From assembly GCF_006345805.1 (NCBI RefSeq), contig NC_042998.1, positions 136,896,001 to 136,960,000 of the forward strand: a DNA stretch of 64,000 nt, given 5' to 3'. The first letter of the stretch is position 1; each line of letters begins with the position of its first letter. This document shows positions 2,758 through 63,597 of the stretch, one piece after another. A model generated the notes under the pieces. It searched no databases. It was not told the origin of the DNA and was given only the letters and a program-made list of their open reading frames with translations. The DNA is from Octopus sinensis. Its lineage: Eukaryota. The position numbers and the translations under genes were made by a program.

Positions 2758-2910
2758 ATGTGTAAACTTAATCTGATCCTCTATATTTTCGTCGTTGCTG
2801 GATATTTTGAAACCATTTTTGCTGATCGTATTCCATCCAAAATTAATTTGATTCGTATATCAGAAGCGGATCCACCCTTAGACGACGAATTCATATCAAT
2901 AATGGGGTGA
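2758..2910 (+). CDS. Divergent tachykinin precursor (Oct-TK-III-like; predicted DPPLDDEFISIM-amide)
   Basis: MCKLNLILYIFVVAGYFETIFADRIPSKINLIRISEADPPLDDEFISIMG-stop aligns without gaps to OctTK-I residues 1-50 (G15, E18, A22, NL30-31, SE, PP, EFI, MG). TATAAA 62 nt upstream. TGA occupies the position of the cleavage Arg. Confidence 0.88.
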   Translation: MCKLNLILYIFVVAGYFETIFADRIPSKINLIRISEADPPLDDEFISIMG

Positions 2911-3394
2911 TCTGCAGATTACAAACTTGGTCGGAGACAACTTTCTGATACTTTGGTTGATAAACGCCAGAAAGAAATGAGTTGGCAAGAATTTGCCTGT
3001 TAGAAAATTTTAAAATTTATTGATTTTAGCGATTTAAATATATTTCTATATGTATAATTTCGGGACATGTATTCATATAACTGACCTAAAATTATAAGAT
3101 ATTTTATCGTATCGTGTTACAAATCTCATATAAAAAGTTTAGATGCAGCAATATGATTCACGAAACATACAAATAATCGAATTCTTTGTTGCCGGTTATC
3201 AATATGTAATCCTGCTAATATCTGGGAATAAAATAGAGGACTAAATACACATCAACCTTGAACCATATTCAAGTGAAATTTTAATGTTGCAATTATTATT
3301 ATGATTAAATTTTATCATAAGCTACGGGGTGTTTTTGAAACCATGATATAATGTGAAGCTTCACATTTTGTCACAGTTAGCGTTTCATAAGAAA

Positions 3395-9150: not shown

Positions 9151-10251
9151 GTAGACCTGATCAGTTGGAAGCGCACCGAAAGTTACAACTTATGTCTGTC
9201 ACGAATGCTTCAAACCATAGACCTGCATCGGAACTAAATAGTCATCGCAGAGGTAACAGAGGAAAAGTGAGAGATGGCACTGACAACGAAGAATGATAAG
9301 GAGACCAATCATCAGAGAATATGGGGCAATCACACACCCACGTACGCATACAAGCGCGCGCGCACGCACACACACACAAACAGAGGAAATTAATTATATG
9401 GCCAATCATAGAGGGACCAATGATTTCGCATCCGTAAAGCGCATATCCTTATAGACGGATCGTAGGACTCTAACGGCCGCAGGCATATAACCTCGTTTCA
9501 ATTTGAAGATAGAGAAACGTTAAAGTTGGTCAATTTGAACAAAAATATATATCGTTCAAGCCTTAGGTGGGATGGGGTTGTCGCCCTTACATCGGTTGAT
9601 TCGGCAAATTTTTACTGCACTTATGAACGAAGGTAGAGTCCAACGCTTGTGGGAGATAGCAATTAAGATGCGGACAAGGATTAGATCGACGCCAGTACGC
9701 AACTGGTACTTAATTAATTATAGATCCCGAACGGATGAAAGGCAAAGTCGACCTCGGTGGTAAATATCGATATATTAATATATAAAATACTGTTTTTTTA
9801 CTCTAGGCACAAAGCCCGAAATTTTTTGGGAGGAGGCCAGTCGTTCAGATCGACTCCAGTATGCAATTGGTATTTAATTTATTGACTCTGAAAGGATGAA
9901 AGGCAAAGTCGACCTCAGCGGAATTTGAACTTAGAATGTAGTGGCAGACGAAATAGTGCTAAGCATTTCGCCCGGCGAGCCAAAGTTTCTGCCAACTCAC
10001 CGCCTTGCGATGAGAGTAAATTAAAAGGCACTGCATTCATCTGATATTTTATATCGTTGCTTCAATTTTCAAAAATATAAAAGATATACAAATGGAATAG
10101 TTGACAAGTTAAATTTGGTAGTTTGTAATGGGGCACAAAATATATACATTCGCAGTCCGAATAATTTCGGCAACAATATGACACTGTTAAGAATTTATTC
10201 ATTTATATATATAAGGGTTGGACAAAATAATGGAAACACCTTAAAATTTCA

Positions 10252-14559: not shown

Positions 14560-14764
14560 CATAATGAAGATGTTTGGATGCGCAATTAAGTAAGGAGTTT
14601 AACATTTTCCTCTTGCAAACTAGAATTTTCTGGTTTCTGAAACTTCAATACTGATAGAGAAATTATTGATCTCATTAATAAATACAAACGATATGATTTA
14701 GTTTTACTGTTTATTTCAGTCGAGGATTGTTAGGATATATTAGATCTGTCGATGTTGAAATAGC
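14560..14764 (-). other. Probable 3'-UTR terminal exon of precursor A (intron 19647-14765)
   Basis: Donor GG|GTAACGTATCCAAT at 19647, same as gene B donor at 45508. Acceptor TTTTTTTTGTTCTTTTCAG|GCTATTTC at 14765; AATAAA at 14715-14710; visibly homologous to the exon at 47272. Distal end approximate. Confidence 0.65.
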
Positions 14765-15284
14765 CTGAAAAGAACAAAAAAAACCGATTAGGTTACTACA
14801 TAAAACAGCGTGCTTAAGAAAGCCTAAAACAATTTACTATAATTAATCTGCAGTTTTAAGCCTTGTGTAAAAAAATAGAAAAAAAAAAGAAAAAGAAAAA
14901 AGACAGATGTAAAAAGACTTATTTTCACATACAGAAAAATAGATTATTCTAGTTGGTATATAGATCTGTTTACCACTCATAATAAAGAAAAATACTCTTT
15001 TTAACACAAAGAGAACATTTAACATCTGCTATGTATTGCAAAAACAAGCTGCAATGTCTAGACTAATTTGCATAAATCGAGATCGTCGGCTGCGAGACTG
15101 AATACTATATATATTTTTATTGTATTGCTTCAGTCATTGGACTGTGGCCATGAAAAGGATATCATGTTGAAGGATTTAGTCTAACAAATCGTCTCCAGTA
15201 ACTATTTTTTAGTTAGGTACTGATTCAACAGGCGGACTTATTGTTGAATATCTAAGTTTCGAGGGGAAACACACACACACACAC

Positions 15285-19658: not shown

Positions 19659-19928
19659 TCAGCCAGCCACATTGCCAACTTTGATAACTCGACAATTACG
19701 TATTCCATAGCAAGGACTTTTTGTAGTGGTTGGACGATACTTTGGTCTTCGAACAAGACGTTTTTCTCTGTTAGAAAACATAGCACTGCGTTTTTCTAGA
19801 GAGAAAGCATCACGAAGACCTCCAGCTCCAGACAGGTTATCTTCGTACAAAATTTCACTCCTTGCAATGCACGTCTCCAGAAGCCCAACCAGGAGGACTG
19901 CATAAATTAAACTGACAATTTTAACCAT
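19659..19928 (-). CDS. Unrecognised secreted peptide precursor A (DAFSLEKR family); predicted cationic, single-disulfide, amidated C-terminal peptide
   Basis: MVKIVSLIYAVLLVGLLETCIA-RSEILYEDNLSGAGGLRDAFSLE-KR-SAMFSNRE-KR-LVRRPKYRPTTTKSPCYGIRNCRVIKVGNVAG-stop. Hydrophobic signal, two KR sites, terminal Gly; TATAAAA 19970-19964; paralogous to the 44994 gene. Confidence 0.8.
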   Translation of the reverse strand: MVKIVSLIYAVLLVGLLETCIARSEILYEDNLSGAGGLRDAFSLEKRSAMFSNREKRLVRRPKYRPTTTKSPCYGIRNCRVIKVGNVAG

Positions 19929-21190: not shown

Positions 21191-24170
21191 TAATATATAG
21201 TAATGATATATTAAAGTTACAATAATAAAGCATAGATATAACTCGCGGTCGGAGGATTGCGATTTCGATTCCCAGACCGGGTGTTGTGTGTGTTTATTGA
21301 GCGAAAACATCTAAAAGTTCACAAGGCTCCGGGAGTGGGTGGGGGTGACCCCTGTTGTACTCTCTCGCCTCAACTTTCTCTCACTCTCTCTTCCTGTTTC
21401 TTGAGTAACTCTGCGATGGACTGGCGTCCCGTCCAGCTGAGGGGATCACATACGCCACAGAAACAGGGAAGCCGGACCCATGAACCTGGCTAGGCATGAA
21501 AAGGGCGACGTTTATCGTTTTTTTTCTCTGGTGGGAATGGTTCAATAAAAAAAATGTTCATTTGAATATCTTTATACATTTCTCCAAACGTACATTTGTA
21601 TTTCTGAGATTTACCTATCGGGAAGGTTTTCCAATAAAATTAACAGCCAAGCTAATGGCATTTTTTCCACAACTTTGTACATCTTCAGTTGTAATATGGT
21701 GAAAACAATAAAAATAAGTAACCTATCGGATATGTGGTTTTCTTGTGGATCTTCAGATGCAATATTACTTGGCTTACTTACAAGGAAAGAAACTTGGAGG
21801 ACTTCTAGACTACAATTACTTATCAGTTTGAATGATTAAATATATATTCTATTAGTGACATGCTAGCAACCGTTCTATTTCGTATGTTAATGCAGTATTG
21901 TTGTAATCTTGATTAATCATAGAAATGTCTGCTAGATTAATTGTTTGTTAATATATGCACAAGGGAAATTTAATGAGGAAGAAGTTAGTTGATTACATAG
22001 ATCAAGTACATGGCTGGTACTTTATTTAATCTCAGACGGACAAAAGGTAAAAGCGATCTCGGTGATATCTTAAGTCAAGATGTAAAAAGCTGGAAAAAAT
22101 GCCATAAGTCTCTGATGCTGTTGTCAATCCACCACCCAACAAATGTAGAGAACTTGAAAATTAAATCAGTTAATTTTCTATTCCCTATTTTTGTTTACGA
22201 TGTTTTACACAATTGATATGAGAAATGTTCCCAGCTACTAGATAATCCGATATCAACGTAATTATTAACTGATGGATTAATGTATAATAATCTGAAGTAT
22301 TACTGAGATTGGAAGGCACTGATTCGAATCTATTATCCTGTTGTATTTGATTTTCCTAATTATTAATTGAATTCTGTGATGATTGGACTTGAACATTCCA
22401 TAATGCATTCTGTTTAGAGACATAATATCTGGATTGTGTATGTTCAACAATATTTTGTTACAAGTGAATGAGTCTGCAAGATGTTTCAGATAATACTTAA
22501 TATTTATGTAAGTGGCGGAAGTTGAGTTTGCTGTCCCTCAATCTGGGGTCATTAAAAGGAGTATTATTCAAGTGCTGAGGTAATTAAAATGCATACATAA
22601 ATTTGTGGCTAACTTAGACATGGAAATCTGCATTTTATCAAATGTAACAATGATTCAAAGGATCAGTAAAGAAAGGGAAGATAACGGTTTCTTCATCTAG
22701 ATCGATGCAGTGTAACAAGTTGTTAGATGCTTTACATTCAGCAGACAATTTTAGTTCTGTCGTGACTACGGAGGATCATTATGCCAATATTATTAACACA
22801 CGCACTGGTTCAATTCCATCCTTTTATTATTGGTCAGTTGGATAAATATCCGACTAACTAATCGATTGTTTGTTAAATTTGGTTGAACAGTAAGTCATTT
22901 GTTTTGGTTTTGTTTGTCAAAGCTCTTTCGTTGCTACCTGCAACCTTTTCAATCACTTTCGACTTCGTCCGCTACAGAGATTCCGTTTGTCTGCTTGCGA
23001 CCTTGTTGCATGCGCGCGCGTGTATACCAGTGTGCGCGTGTGTACATGCATGCGTATATATGTATGAACGTATTCTACTGTGTATTCATGTGTCTGTGGG
23101 TGTGCGTGCTTGTGTGTTTGTTATGTGTGTGTGTGTGTTTATCTGTGTACTTCTGCTTCCTTGTGGGTGCGTGCTTGAGTGTGTCTATGCGTATGAGATT
23201 GTGTGTGTGTGTGTGTGTATGTGTGTGTGTGTGTACACGCACGCACGTCTGTTGTGTAGACATGTGTACCTATATATGTCCGTGTGTATGCCTGTGTGGA
23301 GTGTATATGTCTGTATATTCATGTTTCTGCCTTTTTGTGTGTGTCTGCTATTGCGTATGTGTACGTGCGTGACTGTCCGTACTACCTATGTATCTAACTA
23401 CCTACTTACGTACATATCTATCTCTCTATCTATCGACCTACCTATCTACCTACATAATTTATTAAGTAACTAACAATCTATATAACTAGCTACCCACCTT
23501 CCTTCCTACCTACCTACCAACCTACCTACCTACCTACCTACCTACCTACCCATTTATCTACTTGACTGCCTACTTACGAATGGACCTATGTATGTATGCT
23601 GCATGAGTGGTATATGTGGCATTGGCGTATCCTTAATTTCTACGTGTATTTCCTATTTAGTATGGATAATATTTCATTTGTATTTGTCTCTTGGGTTTTT
23701 GTACAAAATGTGGGTGTCAATTCGGTCCTGCGAGCCACCATGCTGGTCTTTGGTATGTTGATAGAGTACGGACGACTGTTTCTTGTCCGTATACTCTCTC
23801 CAGTATCCGTTTAGCCACTCCATTATACCCTAGAATTCTTCTCAATATATACCGTGTTTCTGTCCTTACAGACTCTTTTCAAGCCCCTTATGCTGTAGAC
23901 TATGTTCCTAGTTTTACAGTTAATATTGGGGTTAAATTTTCATACTACATAGTTCTCATTAATGCATATGGTATTTTCGAAGGGGTGTGTTCTATATAAT
24001 TGTGACCTGATGGACTTCCCTGGCTTCTTAACGACCTTAATGTTGAGTCTGGTATTCTTCAGAGCCATCCTAGATCTATGGGCTAATTCCCCATGATTTA
24101 CATTTTATATTTAAATTACTTTTATTGTCAATAGATTACGTATGCACAGACAAAATTTGAGTTATAGCAT

Positions 24171-25800
24171 GTCACATCTTCTAGAGTTTTGATAGCCACG
24201 AATAATTTTTCGTCAGCGGTGTAGCTCGTGAGTTGGCCGATAAAACTTGTGAGGGTGATGATAAATAAGAATGGTCCTAGAACCGTGCCATGTGGAATAC
24301 CATTTACTACGAGTGACTTTGCGGAGAGAAAAACGCTTGCAACAACAGATTGATTCTTATTCCATAACAAGCCATTCTCCGAGTTTTCTTGTTATACTAA
24401 GATCTTTAGATATGACAGGTGATTCTATGCTAAGTTATGTCAAACGCTTAAGCAAAATCGAGGTATGTACAGTCAGTGTTCATTCCTCTCATGAGATAAT
24501 TGTGGATAGTATCAAGGTGATGTTATAGTTGTGACAGGCAACATCGTCCGGTCCGAAAACCATGCTGTGTGTTATTTATGAGTTTTTTTCCTCGCTATTG
24601 TATGTAAGTATTCTCTTATCAGATAATGTGATAAACAATTTTAGAGGATGTAAAAGAAGCATGTCTGTAAATTTTAGCTTCAGCCCAACTACCTCCTTTG
24701 TATATTGATGTTAGTATTAAGTCTCTCACTAGTTCAGAGAATCAGCTGGCATTTAGCAACTTTCGAAATAGCATCTTTAATGGCTTGGTCAGGCTGGTTT
24801 AGCACGTTTTTACTGATATTAATTTTTAGACGTTTTCAGTAGTATCCATTTCTAGACGTACCTTTGCAGTTGAATTGTGCAGATCAAAGTATTCATTTGG
24901 ATTATATAATATTTTGTTCATTATAGGTTGGGAAAAAGCAGTTATATTTTTTACTCAAGAGTGTGAGTATTTGTGATGAGTCACTTGTTTTTGAGCCATT
25001 TTGGCGCATTAGGGAGACCGATCTGGTCACGTGTAGATGATTTTTGTTTGGCAAATTGGAAAAAGGACTCAAGATTCTATCTTATATTCTTCACTGCTCT
25101 GTGTCCTTTTAGTGAAGTTTCTGTTTCACAAGATACTTTTTGGTCTATTTCAATGTTTCCTTATTTTTTCTTAAAATCTCATCTGCTGAATTTTTTTTTT
25201 AGTTGTTTTGTCAATTTGGTTCTGTTATACATTAGTATCAGTCAGACTCGTGGAATCAAGTTCTTTCAGAAATAGGCGAGTTTCTATGGGGTATAGTTTC
25301 GACAAATTTTTATTAACCTTTCGTACGGAAACTTCATCCCCTCGTTAACATTAAGGTTGCCGATATGCCGAGACCAGTTTGTCTTTGAGGATTACAGTAT
25401 CGATTTCTTTCCACCTGGTCATCTTGAAATTCAGAGTCATGAAGAGTGAATCATGTTTGAAATAGTATGTGTTGCTGTCTATGAACCATATATAAATAAA
25501 TTACATAATGTTATGATCGGAGATAGCTGTTGGAATGAGCTGAACATTGTGAATGAAGTATATATTGTTGGTAAAGACTAGATCAAGTATGTTATTTCCC
25601 TAGCTGGAGAAGTAATCACTTGTTGCTGTAGGCCTTCTTTAGTGGTATTAGTTGTACTGTTAGATATATTTATGGGTAATCTGGTTTGTAGCTGATGACT
25701 TTGCTATAATTTTATGACACACAAATGTCACTGTATGGTGAACTCATTTTAATATCCCGTCTAATGAAAGTTCTGTGCCGATAAAAGAGTTGCAAGGTGT
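24171..25800 (-). mobile_element. CR1-clade LINE remnant (duplicate of 7552-9150)
   Basis: VNGIPHGTVLGPFLFIITL ORF; identity to copy 1. Confidence 0.8.
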
Positions 25801-25967
25801 GTAGACCTGATCAGTTGGAAGCGCACCGTAAGTTAAAACTTATGTCTGTCACGAATGCATCTGAACTAAATAGTCATCTCAGAGGTAACAGAGGAAAAGT
25901 GAGAGATGGCTCTGACAACGAAGAACGATGAAACCAATCATTTGATAAGATGGGGCCAATCACCACA

Positions 25968-26082
<115 letters not shown>

Positions 26083-26741
26083 GAAATTAATTATATGGCC
26101 AATCATAGAGGGACCAATGATTTCGCATCCGTAAAGCGCATAGCCTTATAGACGGATCGTCGGACTCTAACGGCCGCAGGCATATAACCTCGTTTCAATT
26201 TGAAGATAGAGAAACGTTAAAGTTGGTCAATTTGAACAAATATATATATCGTTCAAGCATTGGGTGGGATGGGGTTGTCGCCCTTACATCTGTTGATTCG
26301 GCAAATTTTTACTGCACTTATGAACGAACGTAGAGTCCCACGCTTGTGGGAGGTAGCAATTAAGATGCGGACAAGGATTAGATCGACGCCAGTACGCAAC
26401 TGGTACTTAATTTATTATAGACCCCGAAAGGATGAAAGGCAAAGTCGTGATTTGACAAAACAGTTGGAAGTTTCTCTGGTTTTAATTTCGAAGGTCATCA
26501 CTGGTGACGAAAGCCGGTGCTACGGAATTTGCAGATGTGGAAGAAGCGAAGAAAAAACTGACGGAGCCGTGAAAAGGCATCACTTCGCAAGAGTTCAAAC
26601 ACTGCTTCGAATAGTGGAAAATGTGCCTGGACCGATGCATTGATTCAAATAGAGAATACTTTCAAGGCGATAAAAGTGTAAACGGGAAAATCTAAGCGAA
26701 TAAAATAATATTGCAAAATTCCGGTTTCCTTTGGGTACCCC

Positions 26742-33720: not shown

Positions 33721-35419
33721 ACACTCCAAAAGCCTGGAATTTTATACAAAACAAAATTAACGACGGAAATGATACCTGAAGATTTTTGACGGCTTACAGA
33801 AGACGACGGGACGCCGTAAGAAAAAAAGGACTTATTACAGTATAGCATATATCATAAATTAGCATTTAAGAGGCATAGTAACAATTTTCAAAAATTAGTT
33901 TAACACACACACAGACACACACACACTATACACACATACATACCCCCTGCACACACACAAATTTATATATACTTATATACATACAAACACACACATACAT
34001 ATATACATACGTTCGTACGTACGTACGTATATATGTATGTATGTACGTTTGTATGCATGTATGTATGCATGCATGCATGTATGTATGTATGTATGTATGT
34101 ATGTATGTATGTATGTATGTATGTATTTATGTATGTATGTATGTCAGATAATTTCAGAGTCCTTACTAGAGTATTCTTTCTTTCCTATGAAACTCTAACA
34201 GTAACGATATCTAAAACGGTACGTTATATCATAATTTCAAAAGCACCTTACGATAAAATTAAAGTATAATAACAATCGCTACACTAATATTTTGCCAGAA
34301 TATGGTTCAAGATTGATGTGAATTTAGCCCTGTTATATTTCCAGATATCTGCAGGATTACATTTTAATAACAGGCACCGTTTCGATTATTAGTATGTTTC
34401 GTGATTCATATTGCTGCATCGTAACTTTTCATATGAGATTTCAACTGAAGATGGAGGTTAAGATAAAAGGCAATTTTGTTAATCCGAAATATTGTTTTTA
34501 AGGGATGCTTCATGAAAGTGAAGGGACATTTGTATTCCTTGTTTCCCTACATTCCCTTTCGATATTGTGATAGTTATACTAATATTGATAGATAATTGCA
34601 TTAGCATTATTTAATTAGAAAGTGTAATCAGTGTATATTATGTAGATTATCATAGCCATTATAATTTAGTGAATTATATAACACTATTCTGCTTGTTTCT
34701 TTGTGACGCGAAACGATAAAATATCTTATAATTTTAGCTCGATTATAAATACATATCTCGAAATTATACATAACATAGAAATATATCTAAAACACTAAAA
34801 TCAATAAATTTAACAATTTTCCTACAAATATATTCTTGATAACTCATTCCTATGGTAGGTTTATTAGCCAATATATTAGAAGGTTCTGCAGATCGCACGA
34901 TTAAAGATATGAATTCATCGTCTGGGGATGGATCCGCTTATGATCTACGAATCAAATTAATTTTGGGTGGAATACGATCAGCAAAAACGGTTTCAACAAA
35001 TCCAGCAACGACGAAAATACAGAGGATCAAAGTATTTTTATTTATTGCCCACACAGAGGAGCCAAACAAGGACATACAAGGGGATTAAGTCGGTTACATT
35101 GACCCCAATGATTAACTGGTACTTATTTGATCGACCCAAATATGTTAAGGATTGAAGTTACTTCCACTCTCTCACTGGAACTCGCACATTACTCGGTTTT
35201 TATATTAATTTTTTCTAAAATTCTTTTACCCCACCTGCTATATTATTTGAAAAGATTACCTAATTCCCATTTCCATTTGCTGAGAAAACAAATTTCAAGA
35301 TACACACGAGCATTCAACAATTGTACTTGCGCAACACACGTTCACTTATTCCTTACTTCTGATCATCTAATTATTTATCGATTATTCTCTTAAGTATGCA
35401 TATCTTCAGAACCATTAAC

Positions 35420-39574: not shown

Positions 39575-40680
39575 GTCGTCAAGTATGAAATTTGTAGTAA
39601 GGTATATGGTAAACTTTGTCAGCTGCTCACTTTGTGCCATTATTATATTTTGACCATCTTATTCTTTGTTAGAAAGCACACATCTATTGCTTTATTCTAA
39701 CTTATTTTGCGCTTTATAAAGTATTTATAAATCGTTCTTTGCTATTTTTGTTTAGAAATGGATAAGTCGCAAATTCGTACAGGTTTGAAATATAAGTTCT
39801 TTCTTGTAAATACAATATCACAGACAGTTCGGAATATTAATGGAGTGTCTCATTCTAATGTTATTACACAGCAGACAGTATCAAATTGGCTTGCAATATT
39901 TTGTTCTGCTAACTTTGACCTCACAAAAGAACAACACGGTCGACCAAAAACAAAAGTGGATGATGATGAACTGAAAGTCACCGTCGAGTCAGGTCCATTT
40001 CAATGTGTGCCCGTGAATTATCGCTGTTGTTTGGTGTTGGCAAGCAAACAATATTGACTCATCTAATTCAAATCAGTAAAGTGAAAAAGTTGGATAAGTG
40101 GGACCCACATGAACTCAATGAAAATCAGAAATAGTAACGTTTTGAAGCTTGCATTATGCTACTTTCTTGTCACAAAATGATTCATTTCTGGATCGAACAT
40201 GTGATGAGAAATGGATCCAATACAACATCCGTCAGTCGCTCAGAAACAGGAGAAAAAACATTGTCGGAGCTCTGTACAGACTTCAACGAGGTAAGTACTT
40301 CACAAATATCAACCAGAACTGTTAGAAGAAGGCTTGTAGAGTACGGTCTGAAAGGCTGTAAAACCAGGAAGAAGCCGTGGGTTTCTGAAGCGAATATGGA
40401 AAAATGTCTTCAGCGGGCCACAAAACCACTGAAATTGGAACAGTGAGCAATGGTCAAAAGTTGAGAGAAGACTGGATTCCTAGCACCTGCAAGAAACTAG
40501 CTGATTCAATGCCTAACCGTATAAAAGCGGTTATTGATGCTAAAGAGAAGTCAGCCAGGTATTAAAACTGATGTATATTGTGAAATATACCAGAATCTAC
40601 CATGTGCACGAATTTCATTAACATTGAGATAGCAGAACTCCAAAACACCGGGGTGGCCTAATACTTTTGGCCAAGGCTGT

Positions 40681-40690
<10 letters not shown>
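39575..40690 (+). mobile_element. Fused mariner 5' fragment and Tc1 3' fragment
   Basis: MDKSQIRTGLKYKF..GRPKTKVDDDELK (mariner HTH) joined near 40220 to STRTVRRRLVEYGLKG (Tc1), ending TAATACTTTTGGCCAAGGCTG-TA. Confidence 0.75.
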
Positions 40691-40768
<78 letters not shown>

Positions 40769-42164
40769 CATATATACACGAAGTAGAAAAGTAAGTAGAA
40801 AAGAGAAGGCAAACAGTTTGGCAAAAATTACTTGACAAGGACATTTAATTTAGCTAGATAAAATAAGGCGGTGTTCCAGTATGGCCATTGTCAAATGACT
40901 GAAACAAATAAAAGAATAGTCTCTGACAATTGTTTTCAGGATATCTGAGCTACTGTGACATCGTGTTGAGGAAAATATTCCGTATACTGAGTATTCTGTG
41001 GTTGGAGAGTGATAGGTTAAATATATGTAACAGTGGAAGAACTCATTAGTGATAGTTGACGTGGTTCATTATGTCTAGAAAGGGAGGATAAATCCAGTAA
41101 AATCGGGTATTCCTAAGGTAACTCCATGATCAAAGAGAATGGTTAGATAGTAATCCATGGTGAAGGAAATTGGATGCTAATATTTCCAAAGTTGGACAAA
41201 TATTGTAGTATTTTTCCAACTTTGGAAATGCTAGAATATCTACTGGAACGCCATTGGTCATAGAAATGAATGACCGAGAGTTATTTGAGAATTTCAGCAA
41301 AGAAGTGAGAGATAGTAGAAACCTTTATTATTTGATGTGATCAGGCAAAAGGGAAATACTATTCACTCAGCATCAATTTACTGAACTGATTACGTTAATT
41401 TTAATATTTTTCATTTATATTGGAATTTCAACGAATGTCTATAGACAATCTATTTGACTGATAATTGCTGGAGTTTCAATAAAACCGTAACTGCTTCAGA
41501 TGAAGATTTTCCTTTCCACAAAAATCGTAACTGCTCGAGATCAGGATTTCTAACAACCCATACAAAAATGCTTTTCGTCCTTTTAACTTAACGCACAGAT
41601 GTACATTAAATAGATGGAATACTTGGACACATCGTCAGCGTCGTATTATGTCTGGAATCACTGAGTATTCCGAATTATACAAGCTACGTTCTGTAGGTAA
41701 TCAAGCTTAAGCCGGTGTGCAATCGACATTTTCCTTATCCTACCGATCATCTCTTTACAGCCAAAGCCATATAGGTACTTTCTTAACAGCCTCCTCATTT
41801 ATGTAATTTATAACACTAAGCTTGAAACATGAGATTATGAACAATTTCTTGCATTTTAATTATGAAATGAAAAAAGTAGAAAAAGAGTATCTATGATTGT
41901 GTCCAGATTGCACTCACACACTATTGGTCAACCAGAGATCATCGTGAAAGAGAACTGTGATCGAACTAAGAAACATGAAATTACAAAGTGTAGCTATAAA
42001 CAGTGCTGAATGTTTTGAAATGTTTCCAAATTCTTCGTATCCCTATTAAAATGTTATTATTCAAGAATATAATCAGTAAGACAATAACTTTTAGACATAA
42101 TTAGGGATAAGTGATGTGAACTGTAGAGTGGTCGTGTGCGTCTTTAAAATTGCTGACAGGGCGT

Positions 42165-42242
42165 TTGGAAACGTCAGAACATGTGTATAACCATATGCCA
42201 TGTGACGTATCTCACAAAATTTGAGAAGAAAATTCTATAAAA
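42165..42242 (+). promoter_or_regulatory. Core promoter of the plus-strand tachykinin copy (TATA, CRE-like half sites)
   Basis: TATAAAA 42236-42242, 62 nt before the ATG; CGTCA near 42173 and TGACG near 42203. Confidence 0.65.
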
Positions 42243-42297
42243 CCTGAGAAATCCCTAATATTCCATACAGATTCTGATTGTGATTTCTATATTCAAT

Positions 42298-42525
42298 ATG
42301 ATTAGAGTAGGTTTGATCCTGTGTTGTATCTTCATTGTTGGAGTGTTTGAAGCCAGTTCTGCTGATGACATACTTACAGCACATAATTTGATTAAAAGAT
42401 CTGAAGTTAAACCTCCTTCATCCTCAGAATTCATAGGCTTAATGGGACGTTCTGAAGAGTTGACACGACGATTAATTCAACATCCTGGTTCTATGTCTGA
42501 AACAAGAGAGGTCCACCGAAAAAAG
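42298..42525 (+). CDS. Second tachykinin precursor copy (OctTK-II-like prepro region, encodes KPPSSSEFIGLM-amide), exon 1, with a 4-nt deletion after the mature peptide
   Basis: MIRVGLILCCIFIVGVFEASSADDILTAHNLIKRSEVKPPSSSEFIGLMGRSEELTRRLIQHPGSMSETREVHRKK. Near-identical to the minus-strand copy, but ACAAGTAAGAGAGG has become ACAAGAGAGG. GT donor at 42526. Mature peptide codons 42409-42444. Confidence 0.93.
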
Positions 42526-42689
42526 GTAAAATTTTAAATTACTATTATTAGTTTTACTGTTTACAATTAATTTCTTTGATACAGGCGCAGGAGTGTCTTG
42601 CTTACCAACCACATGGTTCAATGTTCATTCCCACTGCGTGGCACCTTGGGCAAAGTGTATTCTACTATAACCTCGGGCTATATATATAT

Positions 42690-44448
42690 ATATATATCTC
42701 GTTATATTTCGGAATGGTCATTTTGCCAGTTTAGCCAATAAAATCACACGCACTATATATTTAGTGTTACTTTGCTTCAGTGTTATTTATTTTTTACATT
42801 AATCTTCATCTTATTTCGGCCAGAGTTCTTTCGTCACACTCCTGTGACCGCATCAGTGGTCCTTTGTTTTCTTCTTTCTTATTTGTGTCTCTCCTTACTA
42901 ACCGTCAGCCATTTTGTATTTCTATTGTATTTCTTCATTTGCGCATGCTTATATCTCTATGTGCGTCTATGTTTATTTAGTGTGTGTGGGGGGGATGCTT
43001 GTAATATTTGTATCTTCTGTTTATATACGTTCATGTAATTTGTTTTTGTTGTTGTTTTTGTTTATTCTTATTTTGTTCATGTGTTTACATCCCTTTATTA
43101 TTATCATTACATATGCTTGTATGTATGCATGTATGTATAACAACAATGCTAGTAATAATAATAATAAATCAAAAAAATATATATAGTTATTTATTTCTAT
43201 TTGTTTATTTATCGGTGTATTTATTATGTTTTCGGGATCCTGTACCGTCATATGTTGTGGTGTGTACTATTGTTCCATTCTAGTTTTCTATTCAGGCTAG
43301 GTTTTTTTTCTATCATGTGTGTAGCTTCTGTAATTTGTCTGATTGTTGCATCTGTTCTATGTGTGGACAATATTTTAATTTTTATGTTGTTGATTGATCC
43401 CCCGCGTTCCTGTTCGGCGTGTTGGTACAGAATCGATGAACTTTTACCTTCCTTGAGTAGTCTCCAATGTACATTTACCCGCTCTCCTATGCTTCTTGCC
43501 GTTTCCCCTACGTATGTCGTTGTCTTGTTACTGCATCGTCCCTCTATACATCTTATACTATAGACTACATTTCTGGCTTTACAGTTTGTTTGTGGGCTAA
43601 ATCTACATACAGTACAGTACTTATCAGTATAGGGGGTTCTACTAAAAGGATAGGTTCTACCAATTATAGATTTGATAGGGTTGCCTGGCTTTTCAACAAC
43701 CTTAATCCTTAGCTTAAGTTTGTCTAGGGTCCTTTTAAAGCGGTACGCCAGTTCACCTCCAGAGGTGGTGTCAACGAACATGACACTCTGGTATTTATGG
43801 CTATCATACCAAGAGTTGGCCTTCCCTATTTTCTTTTTTGTCCTTTCTATAGTGTTCCATGACTTGTTCCTATAGAGTGGGCAAATCCCATTCCTATCAT
43901 TACATAATATATTATCAAATTTCTTCATGGCTCCTTTGTATACTCTGATCCTTTCTTTATGGCTGTAACCTGAGAACTGCATGCGGTGAATTGTATGTGT
44001 CTCTTTAACTCTGTAGGCTCGCACATGCGTGACACATTTCTCATTATTCTGACGAGGTCTGCCATCAAAATATTGAATTAGGCCTTGTCCGCAATGGCTG
44101 AGTTCCGATGGATCAAGTATTATGAGGCCATAGGTTTGGCATAGTATGAATGAAAGATTTGGGTTTTATTATTCACAATTTCTAGCCAGATTTCAGTGTC
44201 TAGTACTGGTAGTCTATGGTTGGGGTGTTTAGTGGGTTAGTCTATTGTGACCTTAATACTCTGGTGGATGGAGTTAGCTATTTGCTGGATGCTCTCCATA
44301 GTATTAGTTTCTATTACTATATCAACAGTTCTCTCTTGTGTGGGTGCCTTTACCACTATGTTGATATCATCAGCATAGCGAGAGTACACGTTTACGAGTA
44401 TGAAGTTCTGTGTTAGGCGTTCTTTAAGCCTTCTATCACCAGCGATAC
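42690..44448 (-). mobile_element. Penelope-like retroelement remnant in the intron of the plus-strand tachykinin
   Basis: ORF 43248-44024 with GIY-YIG-type motif NVVYSIRC...TYVGETARSIGERVNVH; RT motif YSRYADD. Confidence 0.85.
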
Positions 44449-44774
44449 CAAATATATAAACGTATATATATCTAGCCATATAAGCATCTAGCCATCGTGC
44501 TAACGTTTTTGCCAGCTCACCGCCTTCGACAGACGAAATACCTATTTCTTTACTACCCACAAGGGGCCAAACATAGAGAAGACAATCAAGGACAGATAAA
44601 CGGATTAAATCAATTACATCGACCCCAGTGCGTAACTGGTACTTATTTAATCGACCCCGAAAGGATGAAAGGCAAAGTCGACCTCGGCGGAATTTGAACT
44701 CAGAACGTACGACAGACGAAATACTGCATAGCATTTCGCCCTGCATGCTAACGTTTCTGCCATGCATGCACGCG

Positions 44775-44943
44775 TCTGGGATCAGCAGATGTATCAACAA
44801 TATATGCAATATAAGCTGGTTTGACATTGCTTACTGATGCACGATGGTGTAGCAAAGGATTAATAAAACAGCAGTCAAACACACGTTCGACTTGGGAATG
44901 TTGCAGACGAATGACAGAATCAATGATATAAAATGATATAAAA
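44775..44943 (+). promoter_or_regulatory. Proximal promoter of precursor B (homology to gene A stops abruptly at about 44775)
   Basis: CAGCAGATGTATCAACAATATATGCAATATAAGCTGG...GCTTACTGA...TAGCAAAGGATTAATAAAA...GAATCAATGATATAAAA matches the reverse complement of 19964-20125. Confidence 0.7.
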
Positions 44944-44993
44944 GTGAGATGAAACAGACAACAACAAGTCATTTCTCCATCGAAATGTTTAAC

Positions 44994-45485
44994 ATGAGCA
45001 GAATTGTTTGTTTGATTTATGCAGTCCTCCTGGTTATATTTCTGGAAAGTGGTGGTGATGCGTTCTCTCTAGAAAAACGAAATGACATTGTTGGGAGTGA
45101 TAACGATACTCCGTATGCCGGTGTTGGGAGTGATAACGATACTCCGTATGACGGTGTTGTGAGTTATAACGATACTCCGTATGCCGGTGTTGGGAGTTAT
45201 AACGATACTCCGTATGCCGGTGTTGGGAGTTATAACGATACTCCGTATGCTGGTGTTGAGAGTTATAACGATACTCCGTATGACGGTGTTGTGAGTGATA
45301 ACGATACTCCGCATGCTGGTGTTGTGGATAATATTCAGGATAACGCAGCAGATGATAATTCACTAAACAAATGTATCCAACATAGAATGAGACCTTGCAA
45401 GAAAGGACGTGGTTGTCGAAAAGCAAAGAAATGTGGAAAACGAAAGGAAAATGATAAAAAGCGTTTGAGGGAAAAGAGTTCATGA
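44994..45485 (+). CDS. Unrecognised secreted peptide precursor B (DAFSLEKR family) with 7 acidic 11-aa repeats and a basic 4-Cys C-terminal domain
   Basis: MSRIVCLIYAVLLVIFLESGG-DAFSLE-KR-NDI-(V[G/V/E]S[D/Y]NDTP[Y/H][A/D]G)x7-VVDNIQDNAADDNSLNK-CIQHRMRPCKKGRGCRKAKKC-G-KR-KENDKKRLREKSS. TATAAAA at 44927 and 44937; 3'-UTR intron donor at 45508. An upstream in-frame ATG at 44985 is also possible. Confidence 0.82.
   Translation: MSRIVCLIYAVLLVIFLESGGDAFSLEKRNDIVGSDNDTPYAGVGSDNDTPYDGVVSYNDTPYAGVGSYNDTPYAGVGSYNDTPYAGVESYNDTPYDGVVSDNDTPHAGVVDNIQDNAADDNSLNKCIQHRMRPCKKGRGCRKAKKCGKRKENDKKRLREKSS
45090..45320 (+). repeat. Coding minisatellite, 7 x 33 bp
   Basis: Unit GTTGGGAGT(G/T)ATAACGATACTCCGTATG(C/A)CGGT repeated seven times in frame. 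Confidence 0.95.
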
Positions 45486-46049
45486 GCGTTCTGAAAATCT
45501 TTACCAGGTAACGTATCCAATGAAACGTATTATGACTTTATGTTTTAATTTGAAGATTAGATTCAAAGCTGATATAAATAAGTACACAGAGATTCTTGAA
45601 TTGTCTTTCTAATAATTTGTTATTTGTATTTTACATAAAGGCAGACTACTGTAGAATGTTTTCATCGATTTCTGAATTAAATATACCATTCAACAAATTC
45701 AGAAAGTAATAACCCAAGAGTGTTTTGTTAAGAAGTAGCTATGCATTTTTAATTTGGTTCTTCAGTTATAGAGATCACTTTGGAAAACCTATTAGGAACC
45801 AATATTACTGTAAGTAAATATTCTTCCAAGAAATTAGAACCTCATACACTTTCTTCGAAACGCAGATTTTATAACAGCATTTTTGCTATTTTAAATTTAT
45901 CTTAGATTTTCTGAGAAATGCTGTTTTAGAATCAAAGATATATTTGTTAATCCTTATGAGTCTGCCGATGAACGCTGAACAATTCCTTCTCATTACATCG
46001 GCAACGATGTATGTCATGTGAAGAGCGTTTCTTATGGAAAGATATCTTC

Positions 46050-46700
46050 GCCTGTCTTGTAATGATATATTTACTCTAAAAAAAAACTACATTTCAAAAG
46101 CGTTTCATGTAGGTGTTTCTTCAGATGTAAAATCCGCAATTCTGAGACGTAATTTGCAATTAGGGGAATAAGGTCGTTGTACAGTCGAGCACTGAGTCGC
46201 TGGTGGGTATCCTGTAGGTTTTAGATCCCGTTTCATAACTTCCCAATCATTTAAGGCGATGGTTACAATCCGTCCTTTTAGATCTGCTTATCCATTTGGT
46301 ATTATACTGTCGAGAAACCTAAACTGGTCTACTTTAGAAGCCGCCAGTGGGACAATGTCATTGCTCCATGACAGGATCTGGCACTTCAAGGCGTTTGTAT
46401 CTGTGCCTCATGTTTAACGGCTTCGTGGATATACTGAATTTGTCATAGCAACAACAGTGGATACATGGGTCGTGTCATCCAGATACCTAATACTTTTGGA
46501 GAGTGCATGAGTGAATAAGAAACTTTTTCATGTGACTTTTCGTTCTCTCGGAGTACAAACATTATTATCGAATATCGCTTCTTTTATTTGCACTTGATTG
46601 GGATCCACGGTTATTACTTACATCATCTTCTATAGCGCTTTTCTTTAGATGTTGTCGAATGCAGCATTAAAAACTATGAATTTAAAATACAATGACACCA
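46050..46700 (-). mobile_element. Degenerate RT-bearing retroelement fragment (Penelope-like)
   Basis: Minus strand KSIRYLDDT motif near 46480; otherwise heavily decayed. Confidence 0.4.
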
Positions 46701-47071
46701 CAAATTCTATTGCTTTCAAAATTTTTTTCCCGACTATACAACTATGTCTCCACCGAAACTAAAATATGATTAAATCTCTCTCACCCTTTCCCATCACGGC
46801 GCTTCTTTTGGTTTTGCTTTTCATTCTGTCACCAGGTTTCCCGTTATTGACGAGAAAGAAATTAGCTTGTTTCGAACTTTTGCTTGTCGCCCCTATTATA
46901 TATCGGTGTTACCAACATAGGGATCTAATGTTTCGGCGTCCTTTCTGTCCCTCATATCATTTTAAACATTAACCACTATCTCTCTTCCTTCTTTTATTAC
47001 TCCGGTTTATTATATAAAGAGTTCGGCGCCGGGCTGTGCTATACACTACTATTGTGAATACGTTCACACAA

Positions 47072-47106
<35 letters not shown>

Positions 47107-47271
47107 TACTCACTCACACAAATACACATACACACAAATACACATACACAAGTACACACAAATACACACATACACACATAAACACAAACAGGTCTAAAGA
47201 AAGTTGGGACGGTTGTGAGGGAGAGGAAAACATACAAAATCTTATTGCTTTTGTTTTTTTTTCTTTTTCAG

Positions 47272-47324
47272 GCGATTTTAATCCCAATGAACTGAAACCT
47301 GAATCTAACATTTGTTAAAATAAA
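47272..47324 (+). other. Terminal exon (acceptor 47270-47271): 3'-UTR exon of the 44994 gene and probable co-opted last exon of the plus-strand tachykinin
   Basis: Long polypyrimidine tract TTTTTTTTTCTTTTTCAG|GC GAT TTT AAT CCC...TGT TAA, then AATAAA 47319-47324. In phase 1 it reads GDFNPNELKPESNIC-stop, which I recall as the OctTK-II C-terminus. With the 4-nt deletion the spliced tail is AILIPMN-stop (47293-47295). Homologous to the exon at 14764 (minus). Confidence 0.75.
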
Positions 47325-51010: not shown

Positions 51011-51110
51011 NNNNNNNNNNNNNNNNNNNNNNNNNNNNNNNNNNNNNNNNNNNNNNNNNNNNNNNNNNNNNNNNNNNNNNNNNNNNNNNNNNNNNNNNNN
51101 NNNNNNNNNN
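51011..51110. other. Assembly gap (100 N, true size unknown)
   Basis: Run of 100 N. Confidence 1.
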
Positions 51111-58298: not shown

Positions 58299-58445
58299 TT
58301 GGCTAAATTTGGACATACGACAGTTTAACATAGGAGCAACGATATACAATGAAACGTGTTTATATATACTCAGAGAAGAGGATTGTAAAAACATGTACAA
58401 TTATTAAACGTAAGAAGTACAATACCTGAAATATTTTGGTAACAT

Positions 58446-58477
58446 TCATTTCTTAAGAATATATGGACGACGAGAAA
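58446..58477 (-). CDS. OctTK-I: OctTK-I precursor, coding exon 2 (V-SRRPYILKK-stop; neurotensin-like hexapeptide RRPYIL)
   Basis: Minus strand reads TTTTTTTCTTACAG|TT TCT CGT CGT CCA TAT ATT CTT AAG AAA TGA. Polypyrimidine tract plus AG acceptor, phase-compatible with exon 1. Spliced ORF is 264 nt = 87 aa, ending ...KRGPPKKVSRRPYILKK. Confidence 0.92.
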
Positions 58478-58668
58478 CTGTAAGAAAAAAATGCTTATGC
58501 TATAGCATATTATATTAAATAGTAACATTTGAAAGTGACTAATTTATTAAGATAAATAATGACAGTGGCCTTGAGTAGATCTTTTCCCAGTCCCTATGAC
58601 GAATTTAAAACTTTACAAATCATAGCCTTCTAAACATGAAGTTAATTACAGTCAAAATTATATATATA

Positions 58669-59032
58669 CTAGCAGTATCGCCCGGCGTTGCTCAGGTTTG
58701 TAAGGGAAATAACTATAAAGCATTTTTAGAGAGTTATAGCCAAAAATAGCAAAAAAATGGAAAAAATAATGGTAAATTTTTTTTTGAGATTTAAAAAGGT
58801 GGAGTTGCGTCCCCTAGACAGTTTGTGGTTGTGTTTCTGATTCTCGACCCCATGTCGAATTTATCGATTTTTTTTCAGAAGTGGGGAAACTTTTCAAAAT
58901 TTTCGCTGCGTTAGTTTTGAATTATGACATTGGGCTATGTGTGTGTCAAGTTTCATCAGAATCGGTTGAAAGCCGTGGTCAGGGTGAGGGTACAGCAAAC
59001 AGACACACAGAAACACGCACAGACAAACTGCC

Positions 59033-59085
<53 letters not shown>
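58669..59085 (-). mobile_element. Non-autonomous Helitron-like element in the OctTK-I intron
   Basis: Reverse complement of the 10453-10826 family (CTAGCAGTATCGCCCGGCGTTGCTC...); 5' end expanded into (TA)n. Confidence 0.8.
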
Positions 59086-59088
<3 letters not shown>

Positions 59089-59119
59089 GTTTATATATTT
59101 GTTGTGCAAGTTTTTTATG

Positions 59120-61200
59120 TGAAGTCGTGTGTTGAAACAGATATTGTTATATTTCGGAATGGTCATTTTGCCAGTTTAGCCAATAAAATCACACGCACTA
59201 TATATTTGGTGTTACTTCGCTTCAGTAGATGTTTAAGAGGTAGACCGCCCACAATTACTTCTATGGCTAGGAAGACCCATATAGAAAGATGGCGCGGATG
59301 GACCAGAGCCATACGGAGCCCCGCAAATGTCCATCAGGTAAAGAAAATGATCGCACATGCACTAGCAGCTAGTATAAGAGTTACCATAAAAGGCCACACG
59401 TTTAAGGTTAACAATAAAATATATGCCCAGAACGAGGGGGCAGCCATAGGCGTTAGTATCGCTGGTGATAGAAGGCTTAAAGAACACCTAACACAGAACT
59501 CCATACTCGTAAACATGTACTCTCGCTATGTTGATGATATCAACATAGTGGTAAAGGCACCCACACAAGAGAGAACTGTTGATATATAGTAATACTAATA
59601 CTATGGCGAGCATCCAGCAAATAGCTAACTCCATCCACCAGAGTATTAAGGTCACAATAGACTAACCCACTAAACAACCCAACCATAGACTATCAGTACT
59701 AGACACTGAACTCTGGCTAGAAATTGTGAATAATAAAACCCAAATCTTTCATTCATACTATGCCAAACCTATGGCCTCAAAATACTTGATCCACCGGAAC
59801 TCAGCCATTGCGGACAATGCCAAATTCAATATTTTGATGGCAGACCTCGTCAGAATAATGAGAAATGTGTCACGCATGTGCGAGCCTACAGAGTTAAAGA
59901 GACACATACAATTCACCGCATGCAGTTCTCAGGTTACAGCCATAAAGAAAGGATCAGAGTATACAAAGGAGCCATGAAGAAATTTGATAATATATTATGT
60001 AATGATAGGAATGGGATTTGCCCACTCTATAGGAACAAGTCATGGAACACTATAGAAAGGACAAAAAGAAAATAGGGAAGGCAAATCTTGGTATGATAGC
60101 CATAAATACCAGAGTGTCATGTTCGTTGACACCACCCCTGGAGGTGAACTGGTGTACCGCTTTAGAAGGACCCTACACAAACTTAAGCTAAGGATTAAGG
60201 TTGTTGAAAAGCCAGGCAACCCTATCAAATCTATAATTGGTAGAACCTATCCTTTTAGTAGAACCCCCTATACTGATAAGTACTGTACTGTATGTAGATT
60301 TAGCCCACAAACTGTAAAGCCAGAAACGTAGTCTATAGTATAAGATGTATAGAGGGACGATGCAGTAACAAGACAACGCAATACGTAGGGAAAACGACAA
60401 GAAGCATAGGAGAGCGGGTAAATGTATATTGGAGACAACTCAAGAAAGGTAAAAGCTCATCGATTCTGTACCAATACGCCGAACAGGAACACGGGGGATC
60501 AATCAACAACATAGAAATTAAAATATTGTCCACACATAGAACAGATGCAACAATCAGGCAAATTACAGAGGCTACACACATAATAGAAAATAAACCTAGC
60601 CTGAATAGAAAACTAGAATGGAACAATAGCACACACACCACACATATGACGTTAGAGGATCCCGAAAACATAATGAATACACAGATAATAAACAAATAGA
60701 AATAAAAAAACTATATTTTATAAAATTTATTATTATTATAACTAGTATTGTTGTTATACATACATACAAGCATATGTAATGATAATAATAAAGGGATGTA
60801 AACACTTGAACAAAATAAGAATAAACAAAAACAACAACAAAAACAAACTACATGAACGTATATAAACAGAAGATACAAATAGTACAAGCATCCCACCCAC
60901 ACACACACTAAATAAACATAGACGCACATAGAGATATAAGCATGCGCAAATGAAGACATACAATAGAAATACAAAATGGCTGACGGTTAGTAAGGAGAGA
61001 CACAAATAAGAAAGAAGAAAACAAAGGACCACTGATGCGGTCACAGGAGTGTGACGAAAGAACTCTGGCCGAAATAAGATGAAGATTAATGTAAAAAATA
61101 AATAACACTGAAGCAAAGTAACACTAAATATATAGTGCGTGTGATTTTATTGGCTAAACTGGCAAAATGACCATTCCGAAATATAACGAGATATATATAT
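59120..61200 (+). mobile_element. Penelope-like retroelement remnant in the OctTK-I intron, with about 90-bp inverted ends
   Basis: GAAIGVSIAG, YSRYVDD, GIY-YIG remnants; 59135-59226 is the reverse complement of about 61087-61190. Confidence 0.85.
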
Positions 61201-61355
61201 ATAGCCGAGGTTATAGTAGAATACACTTTGCCCAAGGTGCCACGCAGTGGGAATGAACATTGAACCATGTGGTTGGTAAGCAAGACACTCCTGCGCCTGT
61301 ATCAAAGAAATTAATTGTAAACAGTAAAACTAATAATAGTAATTTAAAATTTTAC

Positions 61356-61587
61356 CTTTTTTCGGTGGACCTCTCTTACTTGTTTCAGACATAGAACCAG
61401 GATGTTGAATTAATCGTCGTGTCAACTCTTCAGAACGTCCCATTAAGCCTATGAATTCTGAGGATGAAGGAGGTTTAACTTCAGATCTTTTAATCAAATT
61501 ATGTGCTGTAAGCATGTCATCAGCAGAACTGGCTTCAAACACTCCAGCAATGAAGATACAACACAGGATCAAACCTACTCTAATCAT
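61356..61587 (-). CDS. OctTK-I: Octopus tachykinin-I precursor, coding exon 1 (signal peptide, KR-SEV-KPPSSSEFIGLM-G-R, spacer, SKRGPPKK)
   Basis: Translates MIRVGLILCCIFIAGVFEASSADDMLTAHNLIKRSEVKPPSSSEFIGLMGRSEELTRRLIQHPGSMSETSKRGPPKK. FxGLM-G-R tachykinin/amidation signature; TATAAAA 62 nt upstream (61649-61643); phase-1 GT donor AAAG|GTAAAA at 61355. Matches the O. vulgaris salivary OctTK-I precursor as I recall it. Confidence 0.96.
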
Positions 61588-61642
61588 GTTGAATATAGAA
61601 ATCACAATAAGAATCTGTATGGAATATTAGGGATTTCTCAGG

Positions 61643-61720
61643 TTTTATAGAATTTTCTTCTCAAATTTTGTGAGATCTGTCACATGGCATATGGTTATAC
61701 ACATGTTCTGACGTTTCCAA
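61643..61720 (-). promoter_or_regulatory. Core promoter of OctTK-I with TATA box
   Basis: TATAAAA at 61649-61643, 62 nt before the ATG; flanking sequence conserved with the promoters at 42236 and 2696. Confidence 0.7.
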
Positions 61721-63133
61721 ACGCCCTGTCAGCAATTTTAAAGACGCACACGACCACTCTACAGTTCACATCACTTATCCCTAATTATGTCTAAAAGCTA
61801 TTGACTTATTGATTATATTCTTGAATAATAACATTTTAATAGGGATACGAAGAATTTGGAAACATTTCAAAACATTCAGCACTGTTTATAGCTACACTTT
61901 GTAATTTCATGTTTCTAAGTTCGATCACAGTTCTCTTTCACGATGATCTCTGGTTGACCAATAGTGTGTGAGTGCAATCTGGACACAATCATAGATACTC
62001 TTTTTCTACTTTTTTCATTTCATAATTAAAATGCAAGAAATTGTTCATAATCTCATGTTTCAAGCTTAGTGTTATAAATTACATAAATGAGGAGGCTGTT
62101 AAGAAAGTACCTATACGGCTTTGGCTGTAAAGAGATGATCGGTAGGATAAGGAAAATGTCGATTGCACACCGGCTTAAGCTTGATTACCTACAGAACGTA
62201 GCTTGTATAACTCGCAATACTCAGTGATTCCAGACATAATACGACGCTGACGATGTGTCCAAGTATTCCATCTATTTAATGTACATCTGTGCGTTAAGTT
62301 AAAAGGACGAAAAGCATTTTTGTATGGGTTGTTAGAAATCCTGATCTCGAGCAGTTACGATTTTTGTGAAAGGAAATCTTCATCTGAAGCAGTTACGGTT
62401 TTATGAAACCCCAGCATTATCAGTCAATTAGATTGTCTATAGACATTCGTTAAAATTCCAATAAATGAAAAATATTAAAATTAACGTAATCAGTTCAGTA
62501 AATTGATGCTGAGCGAATAGTATTTCCCTTTTGCCTGATCACATCAAATAATAAAGGTTTCTACTATCTCTCACTTCTTTGCTGAAATTCTCAAATAACT
62601 CTCGATCATTCATTTCTTTGACCAATGACGTTCCAGTAGATATTCTAGCATTTCCAAAGTTGGAAAATACTACAATATTTGTCCAACTTTGGAAATATTA
62701 GCATCCAATTTCCTTCACCATGGATTACTATCTAACCATTCTCTCTGATCATGGAGTTACCTTAGGAATACCCGATTTAACTGGATTTATCCTCCCTTTC
62801 TAGACATAATGAACCACGTCAACTATCGCTAATGAGGAACGTTCTTCCACTGTTACCTATATTTAACCTATCACTCTCCAACCACAGAATACTCAGTATA
62901 CGGAATATTTTCCTCAACACGATGTCACAGTAGCTCAGATATCCTGAAAACAATTGTCAGAGACTATTCTTTTATTTGTTTCAGTCATTTGACAATGGCC
63001 ATACTGGAACACCGCCTTATTTTATTTAGTTAAATTAAATGTCCTTGTCAAGTCATTTTTGCTAAACTGTTTGCCTTCTCTTTTCTACTTACTTTTCTAC
63101 TTCGTGTATATATGTATTATATATATATATATG

Positions 63134-63181
<48 letters not shown>

Positions 63182-63597
63182 TGTGTGTGTGTGTGTCTGT
63201 GGTGTGTGTATGTGTGTGTGTTGTGTGTGTGTGTTGTGTGTGGTGTGCGTTTACAGCCTTGGCCAAAAGTATTAGGCCACCCCGATGTTTCGGAGTTCTG
63301 CTATCTCAATGTTAATGAAATTCGTGCACATGGTAGATTCTGGTATATTTCACAATATACATCAGTTTTAATACCTGGCTGACTTCTCTTTAGCATCAAT
63401 AACCGTTTTTATACCGTTAGGCATTGAATCAGCTAGTTTCTTGCAGGTGCTAGGAGCAATTTTACACCAGTCTTCTCTCAACTTTTGACCATTGCGCACC
63501 GTTCCAATTTCAGTGGTTTTGTGGCCCGCTGAAGACATTTTTCCATATTCGTTTCAGAAACCCACAGCTTCTCCCTGGTTTTACAGCCTTTCAGACC

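Follow-up and report, generated by a model that had tools for sequence, protein, structure and literature searches.

The stretch of Octopus sinensis DNA examined here (64,000 nucleotides of contig NC_042998.1, positions 136,896,001 to 136,960,000 of the forward strand; the whole stretch is referred to as the window) contains a two-exon gene, gene A, at 58446..61587 on the minus strand. Gene A is very probably the O. sinensis gene for the tachykinin-I precursor of the posterior salivary gland, which belongs to the octopod-specific venom superfamily 1 (SF1). Its product would be a two-in-one prepropeptide comprising a tachykinin mimic and a C-terminal neurotensin mimic of the kind now termed octotensin. 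In one venom precursor of 87 residues, two vertebrate hormones that have no relation to each other are both imitated by convergence.

The neurotensin-like tail had been noticed in an initial annotation, which could not say whether it had been reported before. It has: a preprint (Koch, Yeung, .. Safavi-Hemami, 4 Feb 2026; bioRxiv 10.64898/2026.02.02.703354) describes neurotensin mimics encoded on octopus tachykinin precursors and names them octotensins. The observation is therefore confirmed and its interpretation supported, and the finding is already known; with pharmacology, cryo-electron microscopy (cryo-EM) and in-vivo data in that preprint of February 2026, neurotensin mimicry as such adds no new knowledge. 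New is the local detail of the SF1 array: a paralogue with a different tail, two decayed copies, one of which retains a relic of the octotensin exon, and a transposon-like insert in the gene A intron.

Gene structure and splicing

From ATG to stop, gene A has two coding exons. The ATG lies at 61587 on the minus strand, and coding exon 1 (61356..61587, 232 nt) ends at the donor AAAAAG|GTAAAA. It encodes a hydrophobic, signal-like N-terminal segment, which a spacer separates from the tachykinin mimic; after another spacer come a Lys-Arg pair and the first five residues of the octotensin plus one further base. The tachykinin region reads KR-SEV-KPPSSSEFIGLM-G-R; by translation and motif position, the peptide with its Gly amidation donor is located at 61438..61476 (minus strand), and an Arg follows. 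A phase-1 GT..AG intron of 2878 nt (58478..61355) comes next; it was read directly from the DNA, and the database proteins that match the gene do not contain it. Exon 2 begins at 58477, after an acceptor made up of a pyrimidine tract and CAG (..TTTTTTTCTTACAG|). Its coding part of 32 nt (58446..58477) finishes the split Val codon and continues with SRRPYIL-KK-stop, the TGA being found at 58448-58446. Joined unaltered, the two exons form a coding sequence of 264 nt for 87 amino acids, ending in ...SETS-KR-GPPKKVSRRPYIL-KK*, whereas unspliced read-through of exon 1 terminates eight codons into the intron.

The predicted 13-mer GPPKKVSRRPYIL is accordingly split between 61371-61356 and 58477-58455. 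The initial annotation had proposed the splice from 61356 to 58477 and the resulting order of KR, 13-mer, KK and stop; direct reading bears out this model and all of its coordinates, and database protein identity (see below) supports the splice.

A candidate donor, CAG|GTATTG, is present 20 nt past the exon 2 stop (58420-58430 of the window, minus strand). It is kept in a third gene copy (L003) and in a relic at 33.8 kb, both described below, and the next 261 nt do not contain an AATAAA signal. Because of these two features, the octotensin exon may be an internal exon of 52 nt that is followed by another intron and an exon for the 3′ untranslated region.

Protein identity, genome locus and paralogues

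Letter for letter, the gene A product is UniProt Q8I6S3 (TKN1_OCTVU, Tachykinin-1, Octopus vulgaris). It is also identical to three O. sinensis RefSeq proteins, namely XP_029657824.1, XP_029657834.1 and XP_036355521.1 (‘tachykinin-1 isoform X2’). This exact identity supports the splice model independently of our own prediction. A Pfam scan of the precursor matched no family at E values up to 10, and a sequence search of solved structures with the precursor returned chance-level matches only (best E = 0.38).

The window itself is 100% identical to chromosome CM016860.1 of GCA_006345805.1 at approximately 136,896,001-136,960,000, and includes one assembly gap (100 N at 51011-51110). Two further copies of the gene are found beyond its end. 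The first, L002, is a twin that encodes the same protein; it is positioned head to head just past the window end and is 99.1% identical over 13 kb. The second, L003, lies about 70 kb past the window end, and its precursor (P0001) is 98% identical and likewise ends in VSRRPYILKK. Set against gene A, L003 shows 96.7% identity in the exon-1 block and 93.7% in the exon-2 block, while the intron content otherwise differs; within coding exon 2, the two genes differ by a single synonymous base. The mini-exon has therefore been retained with the gene, and is no chance feature of a single copy.

More distant relatives (P0006 to P0009) do not have the RRPYIL tail; the end letters of P0006 match read-through of the gene A intron. 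Two database models (P0004 and P0007, from O. vulgaris and others) continue from SF1 exon 1 into a gene further downstream, in which ..DAFSLEKR.. precedes many YNDTPHAGVV-like repeats. These models are probably annotation run-ons over adjacent genes of the cluster.

The neurotensin-like tail and its predicted processing

RRPYIL, the conserved receptor-binding motif of neurotensin, occupies 58455..58472 on the minus strand. Translation of the 64-kb window in all six frames yields it exactly once, compared with 0.003 occurrences expected per mononucleotide shuffle. Moreover, this one occurrence forms the exact C-terminus of a secreted precursor, with basic pairs on both sides. The motif is not trailed by a Gly; KK and the stop follow instead.

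Maturation of the precursor can be outlined as follows. The signal peptide would be removed first. Convertase cuts at basic sites would then free the tachykinin (…FIGLM), to be amidated through its Gly. A cut after KR and another at the terminal KK, with trimming of the basic residues by a carboxypeptidase, would yield the 13-residue peptide with a free C-terminal Leu, and Ser7 of this 13-mer may bear an O-glycan. An 8-mer could also arise, by cutting at the internal KK before Val. The second internal pair, Arg-Arg, directly precedes Pro, and a Pro right after a basic pair disfavours cleavage by convertases.

Octotensins as described in the preprint

According to the preprint (bioRxiv 10.64898/2026.02.02.703354), octotensins are co-encoded with octopus tachykinins on SF1 precursors in octopod venom-gland transcripts. 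The toxin set comprises highly expressed transcripts for secreted proteins of venom glands, and the O. vulgaris tachykinins are placed in SF1 from venom-gland transcriptomes; as the gene A product equals TKN1_OCTVU, this indirectly suggests that gene A, too, is highly expressed in the posterior salivary (venom) gland. The predicted peptides are bordered by mono- or dibasic sites, and RRPYIL is conserved in all of them. The open reading frames (ORFs) of SF1 mostly extend over two exons, of which the second contributes 10-20 residues, and the genes form tandem arrays with NR-GRF and FABP as the bordering genes. The O. sinensis genome served for the synteny work in the same study. The O. vulgaris peptide OT-Ovu1 is numbered with Val6 and Ser7, an O-glycan being predicted on Ser7, and ends in RRPYIL.

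Gene A agrees with this description in all sequence features. Exon 2 supplies 10 residues and completes a split codon. The secreted precursor contains a tachykinin mimic of vertebrate type (FxGLM with a Gly amidation donor), and its C-terminal peptide carries RRPYIL between flanking basic sites (KR-GPPKKVSRRPYIL-KK-stop). Local duplication into tandem arrays is seen in the four exon-1 homologues of the window, the inverted duplication discussed below, and the two copies L002 and L003.

The initial annotation had further suggested that one precursor delivers both mimics, that the tail acts on neurotensin receptors, and that it is hypotensive. All three points are now backed by experiments in the preprint (bioRxiv 10.64898/2026.02.02.703354). 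Octotensins are reported there to be picomolar agonists at the zebrafish and human neurotensin receptor NTSR1, with half-maximal effective concentrations of 90-174 pM at zebrafish NTSR1, which marks octotensin as a potent natural NTSR1 agonist. Cryo-EM structures at 2.1-2.2 Å show the octotensin RRPYIL to be largely superimposable on that of human neurotensin in NTSR1, and octotensins cause acute hypotension in rats. O-glycosylation is predicted at a conserved Ser; glycosylated and unglycosylated 13-mers are equipotent in vitro. Since octotensin precursors are unrelated to that of vertebrate neurotensin, a de novo, convergent origin is put forward.

As for other literature, ‘octotensin’ was found in no further paper of the collection searched, and the preprint is the first report found there. 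Contulakin-G and xenopsin are the only neurotensin mimics named in reviews of this field from July 2025 and January 2026; none from octopus is included.

Weighing the interpretation

Several points weigh against reading gene A as the source of a 13-residue octotensin. The source on octotensins is a preprint for which peer review is pending (bioRxiv 10.64898/2026.02.02.703354). By its authors’ own account, octotensins have not been confirmed at the protein level; hence the 13-mer is a prediction, along with its glycan and free carboxylate, and the same applies to the processing sites and to fish as the ecological target. The 13-mer includes internal KK and RR pairs as potential cut sites. The letters of OT-Ovu1 are given only in the figures of the preprint, and its identity with GPPKKVSRRPYIL is inferred because the residue numbering fits and the precursors of O. 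vulgaris and O. sinensis are identical. Finally, conservation in a wider range of species rests on the preprint; in the protein collections, no RRPYIL-tailed proteins were found outside the O. sinensis and O. vulgaris cluster by word-index searches and exhaustive HMMER searches. The missing relatives are probably explained by gene callers that skip the mini-exon.

The question of which mature form is made allows for a possible, though unlikely, departure from the preferred scheme: the peptide is truly neurotensin-like, and the form that acts is not the 13-mer, being instead the octapeptide VSRRPYIL, a glycosylated form only, or a form in which C-terminal Lys is kept. The internal KK immediately before Val would allow the octapeptide to be cut out, the preprint’s account gives no detection at the peptide level, and the O-glycosylation predicted at the conserved Ser speaks for a glycosylated product. 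On the other hand, the DeepPeptide prediction cited in the preprint favours release between the flanking basic sites, and glycosylated and unglycosylated 13-mers were equally potent in vitro.

The role of the peptide is a separate matter. The initial annotation had considered action on fish prey or predators. The preprint’s authors propose fish prey; that the ecological role is not directly observed is listed by them among the limitations (bioRxiv 10.64898/2026.02.02.703354). An endogenous signal of the salivary gland or gut, or a defence against vertebrate predators, rather than a means of catching fish, is thus a conceivable function, and the authors’ preference for capture over deterrence is drawn from the hypotensive activity alone. 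Such a function is nevertheless improbable: neurotensin is described as chordate-specific, which is also the authors’ argument for a fish target, the co-encoded tachykinin mimic is far closer to chordate than to invertebrate tachykinins, and the toxins of the preprint were taken from highly expressed secreted transcripts of the venom gland. Two mimics of vertebrate hormones in one precursor imply that components of octopus venom are aimed at fish.

That the tail is a functionless C-terminal spacer or propeptide remnant with a coincidental match to neurotensin is extremely improbable: although the likeness is limited to six residues, given that the precursor has no Pfam homology, and although UniProt names the precursor as a tachykinin only and reviews up to January 2026 do not feature an octopus neurotensin mimic, the motif far exceeds its chance expectation for the window, sits at the exact C-terminus amid basic pairs, and is kept with synonymous change only in three paralogues while the intron turns over, and the preprint adds conservation across species and picomolar receptor activation.

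Gene B and the inverted duplication

Gene B (42298..47318, plus strand) is a convergent paralogue of gene A, recognised by exon 1 homology and by its tail exon. In exon 1 (42298-42525 in gene B), the two genes share 98% identity. The tail exon of gene B at 47272-47318 is of a different kind: it encodes GDFNPNELKPESNIC, as in TKN2_OCTVU, and its stop is directly followed by AATAAA. Compared with both gene A and the TKN2_OCTVU protein, exon 1 of gene B bears one frameshifting deletion downstream of an intact tachykinin. As it stands, gene B therefore encodes 83 amino acids with the tachykinin and neither tail, the tail exon being read in another frame. The frameshift could be a real polymorphism, the mark of an incipient pseudogene, or an assembly error.

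The two genes are linked by an inverted duplication of 4.2 kb (59453..63597 versus 40345-44451; 95.3% identity), which in both genes takes in the upstream flank, exon 1 and the intron over its first 1.9 kb. Since the homology stops inside the intron, before either tail exon is reached, one tachykinin exon now goes with two tail exons that are not related. Derivation of the octotensin and TKN2-type tail exons from a common source was considered and rejected, as only the pyrimidine tract before the acceptor is shared. A second intact RRPYIL exon was found neither near gene B nor elsewhere in the window, where the relic at 33.8 kb is the only other trace.

The gene A intron also harbours a transposon-like insert of about 2.05 kb (59141..61192), bounded by inverted repeats of 86 nt that are 95% complementary. 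Gene B carries the insert as far as the duplication breakpoint (42700-44451), and the L003 intron lacks it. The longest ORF of the gene B insert copy (43248-44024, minus strand) gives a sub-threshold match to GIY-YIG (E = 0.005).

Decayed copies and the history of the tail exon

A decayed SF1 copy is located at 33800..35030 on the minus strand. Its exon-1 homologue (35030-34857) has one in-frame stop. Near 33.8 kb, a relic of an octotensin-type exon retains the pyrimidine tract and the SRR codons, while the acceptor AG is lost and PYIL-KK is missing. This relic could reflect either simple decay or a state that preceded octotensin. If the latter holds, the window would offer a stepwise view of a hormone mimic being born de novo through the evolution of a mini-exon.

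A second diverged exon-1 homologue (2758..2919, plus strand; 43% identity) pairs with the 35-kb copy at approximately 79% DNA identity. Its reading frame stops immediately past ..DDEFISIMG, so that the product would end in a Gly amidation donor; the upstream KR is lost. This copy could be a short functional precursor or a pseudogene.

Taken together, the duplication that ends within an intron, the relic that keeps SRR without PYIL-KK, and a neighbouring gene that appears to use a homologue of the TKN2-type tail (see below) suggest, rather doubtfully, that the locus records the modular assembly and continuing reshuffling of the mimic. These points do not feature in the main text or the genomics methods of the preprint.

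Other features of the window

An ORF of 89 residues (19659-19928, minus strand) opens with a signal-like segment and contains two EKR sites as well as a CYGIRNC loop. Its conserved counterparts are uncharacterised proteins of O. bimaculoides (92% identity) and O. vulgaris and one Logan assembly sequence (P0012). In an O. vulgaris model (P0011), this ORF is spliced to a tail whose match in the window lies near 14690-14765 on the minus strand, a possible 3′ exon. The exon at about 14.7 kb is in turn homologous, at the DNA level, to gene B’s tail exon of the TKN2 type (65% identity, E = 1.6e-9). The gene may be a distant relative of SF1 or another venom peptide gene of the cluster.

A Pfam scan of nine ORFs of the window (eight of at least 130 amino acids and a 99-residue ORF at 19.9 kb) gave no match above threshold and two below it; NR-GRF and FABP were not specifically sought, and the array extends past the window.

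The window also contains a large direct duplication (1-2169 and 7584-9750 versus 21449-26447; 90-98% identity) and a family of short repeats of approximately 160-280 nt, with copies at 9839, 13387, 44483, 57855, 58076 and 63595. The region is highly rearranged.

Comparison with known systems

Vertebrate neurotensin (encoded together with neuromedin N) resembles the gene A peptide in its C-terminal RRPYIL, the carboxylate of which is predicted to be free in the octopus product, in the 13 residues also predicted there and in release at basic pairs, and the preprint reports the same binding pose in NTSR1. It differs in the N-terminal half of the peptide and in gene structure; there is no homology between the precursors, and octotensin has, according to the preprint, arisen de novo. 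Precursor-wide homology to pro-neurotensin/neuromedin N is lacking both in Pfam (E up to 10) and among solved structures (E = 0.38), and the hexapeptide denotes functional likeness only, which is no evidence of membership. Gene A falls outside the vertebrate neurotensin precursor family, to which only the active hexapeptide bears a likeness.

Among exogenous mimics, contulakin-G from Conus geographus is likewise a neurotensin mimic from a molluscan venom with an O-glycan near the motif. However, it originated independently in the C-conotoxin superfamily, its precursor is dissimilar outside the motif, and no tachykinin is encoded alongside it. Xenopsin from Xenopus skin, which is likened here by description rather than by sequence, is also listed among the exogenous mimics of neurotensin that are turned on other animals, but as a vertebrate skin secretion and not a product of a venom gland.

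Closer at hand, TKN2_OCTVU (the OctTK-II precursor, P0002) has nearly the same exon 1 with a tachykinin mimic (90% identity), whereas the tail GDFNPNELKPESNIC replaces octotensin. In the literature consulted, the tachykinins of octopus venom are considered convergent and unrelated to the endogenous tachykinin gene; that the precursor matched nothing in Pfam is indirect evidence on the same point. The closest known system is OT-Ovu1 and its SF1 precursor in O. vulgaris (Q8I6S3), with the same residues, the same two-exon layout, a tachykinin combined with an RRPYIL tail, basic sites and a tandem array. Nothing of substance separates the two, and gene A is the O. sinensis genomic copy.

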